Below are positions 8,671 to 24,173 of a stretch of DNA of 64,000 nucleotides, in pieces. The position numbers were made by a program, and so were the translations under genes. Numbering within the stretch: position 1 is the stretch's first letter; every line of letters begins with the position of its first letter. Below the pieces are notes generated by a model. That model saw only the letters and a list, made by a program, of their open reading frames with translations, did no database searches and was not told the origin of the DNA. The DNA is taken from sequence record MG655270.1. The stretch is one strand, 5' to 3'.

Positions 8671-8793
8671 ATGACTTTATTAAAGATCGCAGCTGGCGCA
8701 TTGTTCCTGGGTTGGATCATTACCGCAGGCATCACCACCATCGATGCGTACCTTTCCCCTGAACCTACCGAAGGGAAGTCTATCCACTTCTAA
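8671..8793 (+). CDS. 40-aa membrane peptide (not in ORF track)
   Basis: MTLLKIAAGALFLGWIITAGITTIDAYLSPEPTEGKSIHF*; RBS gaggg; fills the intergenic gap. Confidence 0.55.
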   Translation: MTLLKIAAGALFLGWIITAGITTIDAYLSPEPTEGKSIHF

Positions 8794-8815
8794 CCGGTGC
8801 CATGAGGTCTGTTTG

Positions 8816-9304
8816 ATGAAAAATGATTTAAGCAGTTTCATGAAAAACACCATCTGTACACTGACTGTAGTTCAGCAGCGTATCGGCGGTTCCTTCTGCG
8901 CATTCCTCTCTGCCGAACACCACGCCGAAGCCATGGCTGATGACGCGGGTGGAAAACACGGCAATCACGATAACCTGGAGAATGGTCTCTTTAGCACTGA
9001 CTGGTTCCCGGTAGGATTTGGCGAAACACCCCGCGAGGCAGTCACCGATCTTGAAGAACGGGTAATCAATTTCACCAACATCTCAGGTGACCCCAAAGGT
9101 TGGGTTTATAACCATTTGTTCAACATGCTTGTTTGTCGTGTTTATCGTGAAACAGGCACAGGACACTATACCTTACAACCGGCTCTCTTTCCGGAAGTAA
9201 TCCCTGACTGGCTTAAACACTTTGATAAACTCGATGAAGATCTTGTTGATGATTTTATTAAGCGTATTCCCATCAGTCAAGATGATGGCTGGACCCCTCT
9301 ATGA
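8816..9304 (+). CDS. Hypothetical protein
   Basis: Start reassigned to ATG after gaggt; GFGETPREAV motif. Confidence 0.65.
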   Translation: MKNDLSSFMKNTICTLTVVQQRIGGSFCAFLSAEHHAEAMADDAGGKHGNHDNLENGLFSTDWFPVGFGETPREAVTDLEERVINFTNISGDPKGWVYNHLFNMLVCRVYRETGTGHYTLQPALFPEVIPDWLKHFDKLDEDLVDDFIKRIPISQDDGWTPL

Positions 9305-9402
9305 ATAACCTCTGGTTGTTGGCAATGGCCATTATTTACACAGCAGGGCTTATTGCCGCATGTGTGGTGGCACGGATGGCAGTCTTTCATCATGTGATTT
9401 AA
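9301..9402 (+). CDS. 33-aa membrane peptide (not in ORF track)
   Basis: MNNLWLLAMAIIYTAGLIAACVVARMAVFHHVI*; ATGA overlap with upstream stop. Confidence 0.55.
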   Translation: MNNLWLLAMAIIYTAGLIAACVVARMAVFHHVI

Positions 9403-9411
9403 GGGGTCATT

Positions 9412-9690
9412 ATGAGTAAAGGTACTTTGAAAGGCCTTGGTGTGGTCTTGGCGTGTCTTGTGATCGGCGTGTTGCTGTTTGTTTTTGCAACCTCTGTTCA
9501 AGCTGCTGATACACCGGTTAACCCCCACTGCGTCGCTATCACCAATGACAGTACAATTACCACCCAGTGCGACGACGGTACCGTGGTCATTACCAACACC
9601 GCAACCTCGACGGTGATGGTGTGCCATGTAAGTAAAGAAACAAAAGGTCTTCCGCAATGCGTGAAAGACCGGGTTGTCATTTCTAATTAA
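9412..9690 (+). CDS. Secreted/periplasmic small protein
   Basis: Signal-peptide-like N terminus ending VQA-A; four Cys. Confidence 0.6.
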
Positions 9691-9713
9691 CGTTATTCTT
9701 CGGAGCTACACAC

Positions 9714-10847
9714 ATGCAGTACAGTACCTTTAATACCACTAAAAACGATCAGATGGCTGAACCGATGTTCCTGGGTCAGTCGGTTAACGTCTCACGTTAT
9801 GATCAGCAGAAGTACCCCGCGTTCGAAAAACTGATTGAGAAACAACTTTCATTCTTCTGGCGCCCTGAAGAGGTGGATGTTTCGCAAGACCGTATCGACT
9901 TCCAGGGGTTACCGGATCACGAGAAACACATCTTCGTTTCTAACCTGAAATACCAAACCCTGCTGGACTCGATTCAGGGTCGTAGTCCGAACGTGGCCCT
10001 GCTGCCGATCTGTTCTATCCCGGAACTCGAAACCTGGATTGAAACCTGGGCGTTCTCTGAAACGATCCACTCGCGCTCATACACCCACATCATCCGTAAT
10101 ATCTTTACTGACCCCTCCATCGTGTTTGATGACATCGTGACCAACGAACACATCAAAGCGCGTGCTGAGTCCGTCACGGAGTATTACGACCAGCTGATTG
10201 AAATGACCATGTACCTCAACTTACTGGGTGAAGGTACTCATGTAATCAATGGTAAGAAAGTCGTGGTGTCGATGCGTGCTATCAAGCGTCTGGTCTACCT
10301 GTGCATCGTGTCAGTCAACGTGCTGGAAGCCATCCGCTTCTATGTCTCCTTTGCCTGCTCGTTTGCCTTTGCTGAACGCGAGCTGATGGAAGGCAACGCC
10401 AAGATCATTAAACTGATCGCCCGTGATGAAGCCCTGCATCTGACCGGCACTCAGCACATGATCATGTTGATGAAGTCCGGTGCTGACGATGCTGAGATGG
10501 CGGAAATCGTTAAAGAGTGTGAAGCAGAAACATACGCACTCTTTAAGGACGCTGCAGAGCAGGAGAAAGACTGGGCGAACTATCTGTTCCAGGACGGCTC
10601 GATGATCGGTCTGAACAAAGAGATCGTCTGCCAGTACATCGAATACATCACCAACATCCGTATTCGCGCCATCGGTTACGATGACATCTACGCCGGTGTC
10701 AAAGCTAACCCAATCCCATGGATCAACTCCTGGTTGGTTTCTGACAACGTGCAACAAGCCCCTCAAGAGTCAGAGATTACCTCGTATTTAGTAGGTCAGA
10801 TCGACTCAACTGTCGATGCAGATGCGTTTGATAACTTCGAACTTTAA
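9714..10847 (+). CDS. nrdB: Class Ia ribonucleotide reductase beta subunit
   Basis: [37 protein letters not shown] and PQE..SYLVG motifs; E. coli-like. Confidence 0.97.
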
Positions 10848-10904
10848 TACGTGATCAGCTTCACTCACGTAGAGGGCTGATCGCTAGCCCTTTATGGAGA
10901 GTGT

Positions 10905-11738
10905 ATGTCTGAGATAAAAGATAACCCGGATAACTGGAAAGTGATTCCGGGTTACTCACGTTATGAGATCAACGAAGTCGGCGTTGTAAGAAAGATACAT
11001 AACAAGAAGGTGATGAAACAATGGCTGCGTGGTAATTATACCGCCACTGCTATCACTTCTGATAATAAGTCAACTAGTAGAATAGAATCTATTCATATTT
11101 TACTGTGCCTTACATTTATTGGTCCAAAGCCCTTACCTGAACCTGGGCACAAACTTGTTACCGCTAACCACAAGGACGGTAACAAACTTAACAATGTGAG
11201 GTCTAATGTAGAATGGTTATCCAATTCTGGTAATATTCTGCATGCTTACAAGAACCGGCTAAATAAATCATCACAGCACCTGCGTCTAACCAATGTGGTC
11301 TCTGGTGAAGTTGTCGACCTGCATTCTTACCGCGAATTATCCAAATGGATGGGTAATCCTAACCTGCGCGGAAGAATGGAGTATCTGAAGTATCGTAACA
11401 GGCTTTATCAAGGCCAGTGGCGAATAGAACTTCTTGGCGAATCAGAGAAGTCTTCAGGGTCTCGTACCAGTAAGCAAGTATGCGTAATGGATGTGGCTAA
11501 ACGAATTGGATTGAGGGAGGGTGAGTTTGATACTTTCATCTTTAATTCCATGCATGACGCCGCAGCGGCATTAGGCGTAAGTCGCAAAGGTATTGGTCGA
11601 TCGATTAGTACCAAAGGACGCCATGTTGTAAATGGGTACGCTATATCGCTATCATTTGACGATATGGTTAATGTCACTTATGACAAAGCGTATGTGGAGA
11701 TTAGTCTTAAATGGGCGAAACTCAGGGGTCAGAAGTAA
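10905..11738 (+). mobile_element. NUMOD4-HNH-NUMOD1 homing endonuclease, intron-less insertion at nrdB 3' end
   Basis: WKVIPGYSRYEIN (NUMOD4), NHKDGNKLNN..SNVEW (HNH), FNSMHDAAAALGVS (NUMOD1); visibly more AT-rich than flanks. Confidence 0.88.
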
Positions 11739-11806
11739 GTTCTTATCTGGTCGGTCAGATCGACTCGAAAGTTGACGCCAACGATTTCGACGATTTCCAA
11801 CTGTAA
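11723..11806 (+). pseudogene. nrdB: Displaced duplicate of nrdB 3' end
   Basis: Encodes [27 protein letters not shown]; 19/27 aa and 57/84 nt identical to 10764-10847; no start codon. Confidence 0.9.
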
Positions 11807-20906: not shown

Positions 20907-21076
20907 TAATTAAATACTAGGCAGCGTAATCATATACGTAAAGGGGTCTGGTGAAAGCCATATCCCTTTTGGTTATGCTGTCTTTTTTTTTTGGTTAAGA
21001 AATACTAGCCTTCTCCATTATATGCAATTTACACGATACACTTTTCTATTTACTACATCAGCAAGAGAGATAAGAC

Positions 21077-21220
21077 ATGAGCGCACCTGAAGAATTTGAT
21101 ATGGACGGTCTGGAATCACTGGATCTGGAAGGCGCTGAGAAAGCGGCAGAAGAGAAAGCAGCCGGCGGTGGCGAAGCCCTGTCTGATGGCGAAGCAGATT
21201 GCGAAGGTTGCAAGATCTAA
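21077..21220 (+). CDS. 47-aa acidic peptide ending DCEGCKI, resembling an NrdA C-terminal redox tail (not in ORF track)
   Basis: MSAPEEFDMDGLESLDLEGAEKAAEEKAAGGGEALSDGEADCEGCKI*; purine-rich RBS agagag; phage-typical codons. Confidence 0.7.
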   Translation: MSAPEEFDMDGLESLDLEGAEKAAEEKAAGGGEALSDGEADCEGCKI

Positions 21221-21650: not shown

Positions 21651-22262
21651 ATGTTTAAACGTTTCATGTTCTATCTGTTCAGTAAGTTATTTGACCATAA
21701 AGGGGAGTACACCATGTCCGAAGCAGTGAAAGATCAGCAAAGCAATGATGTTAATGCAACCAACGATGTTGAGGTGCAGCCAACACCTGCTGAGACCTCT
21801 GCACCGGAACTGGCATCTAACGATGTGGTTGCCGCACCGGAAGCCGCAGGCGATGCCCGTCCTGAAGTCCAGGATACGGCAGAGTCGACGCCAGTGGTGA
21901 TTGAACCGGTTGCAGTTGCTGAACCATCCGCACCTGTCGTGGCACCTGCTCCTGTTGTTTTACCTGCGGCTGAGCCAGCTCCCGCACCTGTAGCACCGAC
22001 CACCCCGACCGACAGCGATAAGACTGAAGGCGAACCCGATACCAATCGCTTCGACCATCTGGCCAGCACCTTGAAGAGTTTACTTCAGGTAGCCGGTCAT
22101 GAGCTCGACGAAGCATTTGACGATGCAGTACCTTTGGCAAAACAGATCGCTTCCAGTGACGAAGAGTTCGGTGACAAGCTGAAAGACATCCTTGTGGTTG
22201 TCGGTCGTGAATACGGCGAAGCTTTCCATCATTTCTTCAGCTATGCGAAGAAGCACATCTAA
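21651..22262 (+). CDS. Pro/Ala-rich protein with duplicated C-terminal helical module
   Basis: PAPAP linker; LK.LL.V.G.E..EAF......AK repeated twice; alternative start 21714. Confidence 0.65.
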   Translation: MFKRFMFYLFSKLFDHKGEYTMSEAVKDQQSNDVNATNDVEVQPTPAETSAPELASNDVVAAPEAAGDARPEVQDTAESTPVVIEPVAVAEPSAPVVAPAPVVLPAAEPAPAPVAPTTPTDSDKTEGEPDTNRFDHLASTLKSLLQVAGHELDEAFDDAVPLAKQIASSDEEFGDKLKDILVVVGREYGEAFHHFFSYAKKHI

Positions 22263-23347: not shown

Positions 23348-23390
23348 GCGCGGAATCGTATAGGTGCTTTTGCCAACGAGGAATCTTATC

Positions 23391-24173
23391 GTGTTTGAAA
23401 TGCTTTTAGGCGGTAGTCCGAACGGGAACTTGCCATTTGGGCAGTTGTTAGCCAAAACAACAACAGACTTTACAGTTCCTGCCGGAGTGACCGATATTTC
23501 CGGTGTTGCTATCGGTGGTGGGGGTGGGAACTCACGCGGCAATACCATTGGTGGGTCAGGGGGTGATTTACGCTGGCGTAATCACATTGCCGTTATTCCA
23601 GGTGAAGTGCTGTCACTTATTACCGGTGTGGTAACAGCGGCTGGGAAACCGGGCACCTCCAGTAAGATCATCCGTAAGTCAACCGGCGAAGTATTACTGG
23701 TCGCTAAAGGCGGTGACTCCACTGATGTATCAACACCGATCAATGGAGCTGATATAGGTGGCGGGAACGGTGGTGCTGGCACCAATCCATCAGGTGGTGG
23801 TGCTGGCGGGTATACCGGCAATGGTGGTAAAGGTGGTTCAGCTGCCGATGTTGATTCTGGTGGTGGCGGTGGTGGTGGTTCTTATACCTTCAGCGGAAAC
23901 AGTTTTGGTTGTGGCGGTGGTGGTGTCTACCCTAACGGTAAAGGCGCTGATGGTGGCGCACCCCCTGTCAATACCGGCAGTCAGGCGTTTGGTGGTAAAG
24001 GGGGTTCTGGTGGTAATCCTGGTCAAAACACGAATGGGGGCTTATACGGCGGCGGCGCTGGCGCACCCATTAGGATAACCTTTGCAACAACAGGGACTGC
24101 CGGCTGCATCAGACTCATCTGGGGTTCGGGTCGTGCTTTCCCAGCTACGAAGACCGCAGATATTACAGCATAA
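23391..24173 (+). CDS. Glycine-rich virion structural / tail-appendage protein
   Basis: Start GTG after gagga gives MFEMLLGG; FTVPAGV..I..VA.GGGG and IWG.GR.FP; paralogue of 35668-36507. Confidence 0.7.
   Translation: MFEMLLGGSPNGNLPFGQLLAKTTTDFTVPAGVTDISGVAIGGGGGNSRGNTIGGSGGDLRWRNHIAVIPGEVLSLITGVVTAAGKPGTSSKIIRKSTGEVLLVAKGGDSTDVSTPINGADIGGGNGGAGTNPSGGGAGGYTGNGGKGGSAADVDSGGGGGGGSYTFSGNSFGCGGGGVYPNGKGADGGAPPVNTGSQAFGGKGGSGGNPGQNTNGGLYGGGAGAPIRITFATTGTAGCIRLIWGSGRAFPATKTADITA

Follow-up and report, generated by a model that had tools for sequence, protein, structure and literature searches.

To examine a short open reading frame (ORF) in the genome of the Erwinia jumbo phage vB_EamM_Mortimer, we analysed a window of 64,000 nucleotides from record MG655270.1 together with the complete genome of 273,914 bp. 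The ORF encodes a 47-residue acidic peptide, annotated in the record as MORTIMER_112 (gp112, hypothetical protein). Genes for MazG and thymidine kinase are located nearby. The ORF has its own Shine-Dalgarno sequence and follows a strong, conserved intrinsic terminator of the upstream gene gp111. This terminator was missed by a simple terminator scan but was detected by folding against shuffled sequences. Because no RNA family for the conserved hairpin was found in Rfam, we read it as a terminator. An invariant CCATTATATG box lies between the terminator and the ORF. We considered it as a phage promoter, but it was not recurrent in the window (6 matches against 14.4 expected) and no sigma-70-like site was found; no significance could be assigned to it. 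The features are listed in the table.

Features of the gp112 locus and of the RNR gene in the same window (positions in the 64,000-nucleotide window)
Position	Strand	Feature	Supporting observations
21077..21220	+	gp112 ORF, 47 aa plus stop; member of phrog_10239	PHROG profile match E = 9.3e-30 over residues 1-47 of 47
21089..21163	+	Conserved N-terminal acidic-hydrophobic motif ([DE]-F-[DN]-x3-L...L-D-L) and predicted helices (residues 9-14 and 17-29)	AlphaFold pLDDT about 75; motif shared with other phage and bacterial family members
21164..21187	+	Gly-rich hinge and acidic linker (residues 30-37), predicted disordered	pLDDT below 50 at residues 30-33; G31, G32 and E33 invariant
21188..21217	+	NrdA-type redox tail, residues 38-47 (GEADCEGCKI); Cys42 at 21200..21202, Cys45 at 21209..21211; K-I at the C-terminus	Invariant in Agricanvirus-like homologues
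21063..21069	+	Shine-Dalgarno AAGAGAG, 7 nt upstream of the ATG	Conserved
20919..20992	+	Intrinsic terminator of gp111: long hairpin (20919..20983) plus T10 (20983..20992)	dG -36.1 kcal/mol, z = -6.29, 0 of 200 shuffles as stable; almost invariant in four diverged lineages
21015..21024	+	Invariant CCATTATATG box between terminator and ORF	Invariant in the alignment; not shown to be a promoter
9714..10847	+	gp92, class Ia NrdB of host (Erwiniaceae) type with an intact alpha-binding tail	Pfam Ribonuc_red_sm 1e-52; E. coli R2 structures E = 3e-201, end to end; 76-77% identical to Pantoea NrdB

The earlier note had described this ORF as a free-standing peptide with its own ribosome-binding site after a terminator, without nrdA sequence upstream, and resembling the redox-active C-terminal tail of the ribonucleotide reductase (RNR) alpha subunit, and this observation was confirmed in each of these points. 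To evaluate the likeness, the C-terminus of gp112 was compared with NrdA sequences retrieved from databases. NrdA of E. coli (R1, 4r1r_A) and of Pantoea ends in QDDGCESGACKI, and NrdA of phage CR3 ends in DDGCGGGACKL, while five phage NrdAs end in exactly the heptapeptide DCEGCKI of gp112, preceded by AE or PD where gp112 has EA (EADCEGCKI in gp112 against AEDCEGCKI or PDDCEGCKI). The match is not limited to a CxxC motif, but includes the acidic run, Glu after the first Cys, Gly before the second Cys and K-[IL] at the very C-terminus. Among 2.9 million viral contigs, the heptapeptide followed by a stop occurs only in NrdA, in the gp112 family and its fusions, and in one spurious antisense ORF. 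The last of these accounts for 57 extra motif hits in prophage-like contigs, which belong to a non-acidic ORF antisense to a KilA-N gene. Three tail variants, DCEGCKI, CESGACKI and CEGGGCKI, each terminate both true NrdAs and small non-RNR proteins, with counts of 5 NrdA versus 30 non-RNR, 20 versus 9, and 1 versus 8, respectively. This co-occurrence is hard to explain unless both kinds of protein serve the same partner. On the other hand, the similarity is confined to about 10-19 residues. A phmmer search of the peptide against the PDB found no RNR, searches of the peptide and of its bacterial homologue against PDB, Pfam and NCBIfam returned nothing, and gp112 contains no catalytic barrel (Ribonuc_red_lgN/lgC) or ATP-cone. 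In addition, the tail of gp112 is Cx2C, whereas that of the host-clade NrdA (Pantoea) is Cx4C.

To determine the distribution of the peptide, homologues were sought with degenerate DNA patterns and profile searches. Conservation of the terminal cysteines had been proposed in advance as a criterion for the reading, and the cysteines and the terminal K-I are conserved in all homologues. In Agricanvirus-like lineages the gene is kept at 47 aa with the last 10 residues invariant, and the dN/dS values of 0.19-0.39 indicate purifying selection. Four other tail-bearing proteins also match phrog_10239, two of them with their C-terminal part. The family is spread over at least five unrelated phage groups, including 50-kb myoviruses and T4/Vi01-like jumbo phages, and many bacterial genera. 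It includes a conserved chromosomal gene of 43 aa in Erwinia, Pantoea, Serratia and relatives, and a phage profile from which the tail had been removed still found the bacterial peptides. Within Erwinia the chromosomal homologue was found in E. pyrifoliae, E. piriflorinigrans and E. tasmaniensis only, which leaves its presence in E. amylovora itself unsettled. In phages the gene lies among nucleotide-metabolism genes: it is next to MazG in phage Wellington, and between dCMP deaminase and thymidylate synthase in pEa_SNUABM_5. No nrd gene is adjacent in any locus examined.

Translation of the ORF had also been named beforehand as a point on which the idea would stand or fall. Published crude-lysate proteomics of phages RAY and Deimos-Minion list the phage NrdB but not this peptide, and there is no direct evidence of translation yet. 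This lack of detection could suit an evolutionary relic, the leftover 3' end of a captured host nrdA, or a chance ORF. Indeed, the phage did capture host nrd DNA, because its nrdB is of host type and a displaced copy of the nrdB 3' end lies after the HNH gene. However, the purifying selection, the conserved Shine-Dalgarno and terminator context, the distance of 10 kb from nrdB, and the wide distribution of the family with conserved N-terminal features absent from NrdA make a relic or non-functional ORF very unlikely. The suggestion in the earlier note that a GLE-S motif makes the peptide a head-protease substrate is likewise not supported. The peptide is not among the proteins detected in lysates, the family also occurs in bacteria and in phages unrelated to the nucleus-forming jumbo phages, and x-x-E motifs are expected by composition in so Glu-rich a peptide.

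The main proposal of the earlier note was that the phage encodes a split NrdA, of which gp112 is the detached redox arm, and it had asked whether an nrdA elsewhere in this genome lacks its own Cys pair. The search showed that there is no such gene: tblastn with a phage NrdA against the complete Mortimer genome gave a best E value of 4.1 in any frame, and none of the large hypothetical proteins has an RNR domain. The only RNR gene of Mortimer is gp92, a lone host-like NrdB located 10 kb upstream of gp112, which must pair with host NrdA and whose product was detected by MS in the Deimos-Minion lysate. Furthermore, pEa_SNUABM_5 and Pantoea phage AAM37 have no RNR gene by tblastn, and coliphage N4 has neither rnr nor trx according to the literature (PMC2784036), yet all three carry the tail, and the host-clade NrdA (Pantoea) keeps its own intact tail. 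Although a detached Cys-pair subunit has a precedent in split class II RNR (PMC4520616), the split-NrdA reading is refuted by the sequences, and only a very remote possibility is left to it. The interpretation of the earlier note was therefore only partly supported. It was right that gp112 is a free-standing acidic peptide with an NrdA-type Cys-pair tail and not a displaced end of an adjacent nrdA, and two of its alternatives, a diffusible shuttle (here for the host enzyme) and a decoy for thioredoxin (Trx) or glutaredoxin (Grx), are still in play. It did not include the lone NrdB, the homologous 43-aa peptide of the host clade, or the portable nature of the tail.

To obtain information on the N-terminal half of gp112, its predicted structure and motif were examined. 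The AlphaFold model has a mean pLDDT of 64, with a helical region at residues 9-29 of modest confidence and a tail below 55. The predicted structure, an N-terminal helix followed by a floppy tail, fits the shuttle reading given below, but these values do not settle whether the protein as a whole is intrinsically disordered. We also considered that the N-terminal motif mimics the C-terminal alpha-binding tail of NrdB, which looked attractive in comparison with the CR3, Pantoea and gp92 tails. However, a PSSM of 27 unique Erwiniaceae-type NrdB tails tested against shuffles gave p = 0.25 for gp112 and a median p of 0.17, with 10 of 26 non-independent relatives below 0.05, and the NrdBs encoded next to DCEGCKI-type NrdAs have unrelated tails. 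This idea was rejected. A RiPP precursor was also not supported, because the phage neighbours have no radical SAM, YcaO, cyclase or protease/exporter domains and the only conserved bacterial neighbour is yedI (DUF808).

The same tail is appended to homologues of the Acb4-type (PF13876, Phage_gp49_66) sponges, including N4 gp49. In these fusions the match extends over about 19 residues, to the hydrophobic D-L-V..[LI] arm of E. coli and Pantoea NrdA. A simple electron shuttle does not explain these fusions, and the attachment of the tail to unrelated domains, including tetrameric Acb4-type sponges, raises the possibility that it serves a partner or purpose unrelated to RNR. The cysteines might bind a metal or form intermolecular disulfides that staple oligomers, the tail might tether its carrier to thioredoxin for a non-RNR purpose, or the bacterial peptide might work with the membrane protein YedI, and the likeness to NrdA would then reflect a shared generic module. 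In bacteria, yedI is upstream on the same strand in at least 72 of 120 loci. However, E. coli has an unrelated gene, yodC, at the position after yedI, which we first considered as the orthologue of the bacterial peptide and rejected because the sequence is unrelated, so that this synteny is weak evidence. Together with the extended match and the three co-varying tail versions shared with NrdA, these observations make a role unrelated to RNR unlikely, though not excluded.

From these results, we consider it slightly more likely than not that gp112 acts through the partners of the host NrdA tail, namely the NrdA active site and/or thioredoxin/glutaredoxin. As a tentative mechanism, the reduced Cys42/Cys45 pair would enter the active site of host NrdA, as the enzyme's own tail does, and reduce the disulfide left after each turnover, the oxidised peptide would leave, and host thioredoxin or glutaredoxin would re-reduce it. 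In this view the peptide is an extra, diffusible electron shuttle that keeps host NrdA turning over for a phage that depends on it, and in Mortimer it would act alongside the phage-supplied NrdB, which fits a strategy of propping up host alpha. The tail cysteines of the enzyme reduce the active site from the other polypeptide of the dimer and are reduced by Trx/Grx, and a second dithiol acting directly on the active site adds to the tail-dependent rate (PMC4078304). A free 25-mer R1 tail is also a ligand in a solved entry (1qfn_B). What the analysis itself demonstrates is the ORF with its conservation and selection, the identity of the tail with real NrdA tails in three variants, the absence of NrdA in Mortimer, pEa_SNUABM_5 and AAM37 by tblastn and in N4 from the literature, and the existence of one family spanning phages and host chromosomes. 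Translation, binding to NrdA, Trx or Grx, redox cycling and the direction of the effect are our inferences; there is no direct evidence of binding or redox activity, and no complex prediction or interaction data entered the analysis. The mechanism also has to accommodate that host NrdA keeps its own tethered tail, whose local concentration a free peptide can hardly match, and that bacteria with an intact NrdA tail keep the chromosomal homologue.

Alternatively, the peptide could be a competitive inhibitor or decoy that occupies the entrance of the NrdA active site or soaks up thioredoxin/glutaredoxin in place of the enzyme's own tail, and thereby damps host class Ia RNR, working like yeast Sml1. 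The bacterial homologue would then be an endogenous brake on RNR, which the phage copies would hijack. The identity of the tail is equally consistent with this reading. Peptide mimics of RNR tails, such as R2 C-terminal peptides, usually inhibit, the conserved motif and helix in the N-terminal half could provide anchoring beyond the tail, and the fusion to anti-defence-type Acb4 domains points to a role in host-phage conflict. On the other hand, the carriers without NrdA depend on the host enzyme, so that blocking it would starve their own replication, and Mortimer invests in a host-type NrdB that needs an active host alpha. These points argue against a pure inhibitor. We regard inhibition as unlikely, and among readings through the tail's partners we somewhat favour boosting over blocking.

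In the broader view, which we consider about as likely as not, Enterobacterales and many of their phages share an undescribed class of small proteins that carry a detached copy of the NrdA redox tail, either alone or fused to other modules such as Acb4-type sponges, and use it to control or feed the reduction step of host class Ia RNR. This would be a first bacterial/phage counterpart of tail-directed RNR regulation and a way for phages without an RNR to manage host dNTP synthesis. Re-reduction of the active site through the alpha tail is a required step of every class I RNR turnover, yet no trans-acting protein that imitates this tail has been described in bacteria or phages; a full-text search of the papers available to the analysis for the tail string and keyword searches for phage RNR-tail proteins returned nothing relevant. 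If the family acts at this step, it reveals a new control point of dNTP supply during infection, helps to explain how phages lacking an RNR large subunit (jumbo Erwinia phages, Pantoea Dibbivirus and coliphage N4) exploit host NrdA, and gives a function to the conserved 43-aa gene in Erwinia, Pantoea and Serratia. It also raises the question of why anti-CBASS-type sponge homologues such as N4 gp49 carry the same tail, and makes the long-standing biochemical question of whether the tail can work in trans as a free peptide testable with natural sequences.

Among the known systems, the closest is the C-terminal redox tail of class Ia NrdA, e.g. E. coli residues ~737-761 with Cys754/Cys759, which shares with gp112 an acidic flexible arm and two cysteines 2-4 residues apart, with Glu after the first Cys, Gly before the second and K-I as the last two residues. 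gp112 differs in having no catalytic body, in having its own start, Shine-Dalgarno and terminator, and in carrying an N-terminal motif and helix not found in NrdA. NrdJb of the split class II RNR of Pseudomonas aeruginosa is also a separate polypeptide, whose main role is to carry the redox-active C-terminal cysteines and perform thiol-disulfide exchange for the catalytic subunit (PMC4520616), but it is a larger piece of the ancestral enzyme, is encoded next to NrdJa and binds it stably, while gp112 has no cognate tail-less partner and the enzyme it would serve already has a tail. The eukaryotic regulators Sml1, Spd1, Hug1 and Dif1 are small disordered proteins that act on RNR subunits, and a small, acidic, disordered protein is the format of the inhibitors Sml1 and Hug1. 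Sml1 of yeast inhibits by binding the large subunit (PMC4245953), and the title of Zhang et al. 2007 links its inhibition to the role of the R1 C-terminus in enzyme regeneration. These proteins have no sequence relation to gp112, do not carry a copy of the tail and are inhibitors, whereas the direction for gp112 is not shown; to our knowledge no such protein has been described in bacteria or phages. Members of the Acb4/PF13876 anti-CBASS sponge family in enterobacterial phages, including N4 gp49 and proteins encoded on contigs of 70-76 kb, a size typical of N4-like phages, end in the same NrdA-type tail after an acidic linker, but gp112 lacks the sponge domain entirely, and the Acb4 paper does not mention such a tail. 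Finally, the chromosomal 43-aa hypothetical protein of Erwiniaceae, Yersiniaceae and relatives (e.g. WP_023655371.1) has the same architecture as gp112 and 9 of the last 10 residues identical (DEADCEGCKI against GEADCEGCKI), but it is bacterial, sits downstream of yedI with its own terminator and lacks the Gly-rich hinge, and its function is equally unknown.

To confirm that the small ORF described in the earlier note is present, the window, which corresponds to bases 62001-126000 of Erwinia phage vB_EamM_Mortimer (MG655270.1), was compared with its source record. Mortimer is an Agricanvirus jumbo phage, and its gp227 is a chimallin, so it is a nucleus-forming phage. The ORF encodes exactly the 47 residues given in the note, and the record annotates it as gp112, hypothetical protein. 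The observation of a short free-standing ORF with its own ribosome-binding site behind a terminator was therefore correct. An AAGAGAG Shine-Dalgarno sequence precedes the ORF by 7 nt, and about 85 nt upstream lies an unusually long and stable hairpin (about 65 nt, dG -36.1 kcal/mol, z = -6.3) followed by T10, a terminator for gp111. The hairpin, the spacer and the ORF are conserved in AH06 and in two metagenomic relatives, and the hairpin is conserved more strongly than the flanking coding DNA in four lineages, while no Rfam family matched it. An invariant CCATTATATG box between the hairpin and the ORF is not a recurrent element, and therefore, we do not call it a promoter. Two neighbouring hypothetical proteins are strongly low-complexity, as gp114 has a long Pro/Ala/Val-rich acidic middle and gp116 is Gly-rich, and neither has a Pfam match. 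The positions of the features are collected in the table.

Positions of the features described in the text (L numbers denote loci recovered in the motif scans)
Feature	Sequence	Position	Strand
gp112 ORF	window	21077..21220	+
Terminator hairpin of gp111	window	20919..20983
Terminator hairpin with T10	window	20919..20992
Invariant CCATTATATG box	window	21015..21024
gp92 (NrdB)	window	9714..10847
HNH gene gp93 and nrdB 3' remnant	window	10905..11806
HNH gene gp93	window	10905..11738
nrdB 3' remnant	window	11711..11806
Region compared for the nrdB alleles	window	8700..11800
gp114	window	21651..22262
gp116	window	23364..24173
Coliphage N4 gp49	L267	1088-1459
Chromosomal 43-aa gene	L155	5079-5213	-
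134-codon ORF antisense to a KilA-N domain gene	L020	6839-7240

To investigate whether the ORF is a gene, its homologues were compared. The peptide is 98-100% identical in all the cultured E. amylovora Agricanviruses and 74.5% identical in AH06, and the metagenomic relatives are 82-89% identical, plus one at 70%. Conservation of the terminal cysteine motif had been proposed in advance as a check, and indeed the length is held at 47 aa and the last ten residues are invariant. The pairwise dN/dS is 0.19-0.39. The peptide is the seed of phrog_10239, a family of unknown function. Detection by mass spectrometry had likewise been suggested, but published proteomics of RAY and Deimos-Minion crude lysates list the phage NrdB and not this peptide, so that its translation is still inferred. 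AlphaFold predicted helices of modest confidence at residues 9-14 and 17-29, followed by a Gly-rich hinge and a tail of low confidence.

To examine the likeness of the C-terminus to the NrdA tail, only sequences retrieved from databases were used. NrdA of phage CR3 ends in DDGCGGGACKL, E. coli R1 (4r1r_A) ends in QDDGCESGACKI, 7mdi_A ends in DDGCAGGACKI, and NrdA of Pantoea agglomerans ends as that of E. coli does, while gp112 ends in GEADCEGCKI. A scan of 2.9 million viral contigs for the back-translated heptapeptide DCEGCKI plus stop gave 92 places. Of these, 57 (L020 and 56 similar loci) lie in a recurrent 134-codon ORF that is non-acidic and runs antisense to a KilA-N domain gene in prophage-like contigs, a chance match that inflates motif counts. 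Five are the ends of true NrdA proteins (L017, L059, L067, L078 and L104), 16 are free-standing acidic peptides of 41-77 aa (one is cut by the locus end), seven are Phage_gp49_66 domain proteins, and seven are other small fusions. The two Cx4C versions behaved in the same way. CESGACKI plus stop ends 20 NrdAs, seven free-standing 54-aa peptides and two small fusions, and CEGGGCKI plus stop ends one NrdA, two free-standing peptides, one longer fusion and five Phage_gp49_66 proteins. So three distinct tail variants are each shared between NrdA and small non-RNR proteins. In the gp49_66 fusions the match extends about 19 residues, including the hydrophobic D-L-V..[LI] arm seen in E. coli and Pantoea NrdA, which is far beyond a generic CxxC. 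These results indicated that the tail of gp112 really is an NrdA tail.

The earlier note had proposed that the phage may encode a split NrdA with gp112 as its detached arm, and finding nrdA elsewhere in the genome had been named as one of the checks. The Mortimer record annotates only an NrdB (gp92), tblastn of a phage NrdA against all 273,914 bases found nothing (best E = 4.1), and no large hypothetical protein has an RNR domain. gp92 is of host type, as it aligns end to end with E. coli R2 (E = 3e-201) and is 76-77% identical to Pantoea NrdB, against 58.7% to the nearest other phage NrdB, and it must therefore pair with host NrdA. Right after the HNH endonuclease gene that follows nrdB lies a displaced second copy of the nrdB 3' end, 27 codons long and 70% identical to gp92 residues 351-377. 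It encodes a host-type tail ending in ANDFDDFQL, whereas the working gene ends in AFDNFEL, and it looks like a footprint of a homing-endonuclease insertion at the end of nrdB. Among otherwise 95-99% identical phages, nrdB exists as two alleles only about 82-83% identical in DNA, with Deimos-Minion, MadMel, Rebecca, Desertfox and AH06 against the RAY group, and the published paper describes a reversed order of the HNH and RNR genes in some of them. The tail-bearing protein of pEa_SNUABM_5, a T4/Vi01-like jumbo phage unrelated to Agricanvirus, is a 208-aa acidic protein with the same last 18 residues except for one, and that genome has neither NrdA nor NrdB. Pantoea phage AAM37 (50 kb) has the free-standing peptide and no RNR. 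Coliphage N4 gp49 carries the Cx4C tail, and N4 has neither rnr nor trx (PMC2784036). Other carriers are the Wellington and Kwan jumbo phages, where the gene is next to MazG, and the Alexandravirus-like Erwinia and Dickeya jumbo phages. The split-enzyme idea thus fails, and the tail therefore works on something the host supplies. The interpretation in the note was accordingly supported only in part, because its likeness to the NrdA tail holds, while its further idea that the peptide is a head-protease substrate has no support.

To investigate whether the host also encodes such a peptide, one genome per bacterial species was scanned for the motif. At least 120 loci were found, almost all of them in Erwinia, Pantoea, Serratia, Sodalis, Tatumella, Mixta, Izhakiella, Rouxiella, Hafnia and Budvicia. 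In all but a handful of the 120 loci examined (L155 and about 115 others among L109-L228), the motif ends a ~43-aa acidic ORF with the same architecture as gp112, terminating in DEADCEGCKI, and 9 of its last 10 residues are identical. The gene has its own RBS and a clean terminator, and lies downstream of the DUF808 membrane gene yedI in at least 72 of the 120 loci, while E. coli has the unrelated yodC at that position. It is present on more than a thousand contigs and is named only 'hypothetical protein', with stray automatic 'TraD' labels. The homologue is present in E. pyrifoliae, E. piriflorinigrans and E. tasmaniensis, although its presence in E. amylovora itself was not verified. The hit in the Pantoea stewartii chromosome (L157) is of the phage type, nearly identical to the peptide on viral contig L069, and not of the chromosomal type, and it is probably a prophage-borne copy. 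A profile built from the phage peptides with the last eight residues removed still scored the bacterial peptides at a median of 12.5 bits, a score reached by only 0.05% of composition-matched shuffles, so this is one family and not just a shared tail. A profile search of 1.84 billion representatives found only 17 proteins at E <= 0.001, which include longer fusions and tails such as NECEGGGCKI, VCESGACSI and NDCGGACSI.

The tail is a portable module. Phage_gp49_66 (PF13876) is the Acb4 anti-CBASS sponge family, and its homologues in enterobacterial phages carry an acidic linker and an NrdA-type Cys tail at the C-terminus (L044, L053, L084, L094, L098, L266 and L268-L270), including the family's namesake, N4 gp49. 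The closest solved structure to N4 gp49 is Acb4 itself (9e4w_A, E = 9e-4). The Acb4 paper equates the family with PF13876 and says nothing about a Cys tail. Other carriers have N-terminal parts with no known domain. In gp112, the N-terminal [DE]-F-[DN]-x3-L motif looked like the alpha-binding tails of NrdB, which end in NDFDDFQL in Pantoea and AFDNFEL in gp92. However, a position-specific test against shuffles gave p = 0.25 for gp112 and a median of 0.17 across the family, and NrdBs encoded beside DCEGCKI-type NrdAs have unrelated tails, and therefore, this idea was rejected.

It is established that, after each turnover, the tail Cys pair of the other alpha polypeptide reduces the active-site disulfide of class I RNR, that thioredoxin or glutaredoxin then reduces the tail, and that a second dithiol acting directly on the active site adds to the tail-dependent rate (PMC4078304). 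A free 25-residue R1 tail is a ligand in PDB entry 1qfn. That entry is the glutaredoxin-1 mixed disulfide. In split class II RNR, a separate polypeptide (NrdJb) carries the Cys pair and provides thiol-disulfide exchange (PMC4520616). We infer that gp112 engages the same partners as the host NrdA tail. The conserved gene, the identity of its tail and the spread of the family were observed directly in the sequences, whereas translation, this engagement and its effect on the host enzyme are inferred. Every carrier examined lacks NrdA, and Mortimer also brings a host-type NrdB, and we therefore favour, tentatively, an auxiliary, diffusible dithiol shuttle that sustains host NrdA. The main objections are that the host enzyme already has a tethered tail, that the bacterial homologue is not linked to nrd genes, and that the fusion to sponge domains is unexplained. 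A competitive inhibitor or redoxin decoy in the style of Sml1 comes next and is less likely, and a use of the tail outside RNR follows closely as a doubtful possibility, the remainder being an unknown function or none.

The gene itself was already annotated as hypothetical and sits in a PHROG of unknown function, and no paper mentioning the tail string, or a phage or bacterial RNR-tail mimic, was found. What is new is the identification of its tail, the reach of the family into host chromosomes, its modular spread, and its association with NrdA-less phages. We place gp112 with the RNR redox tail acting from a separate polypeptide, as a new form of it. It does not have the catalytic barrel that defines NrdA, no tail-less partner as in split RNR is encoded in the genome, and it has no sequence homology to Sml1-type regulators.
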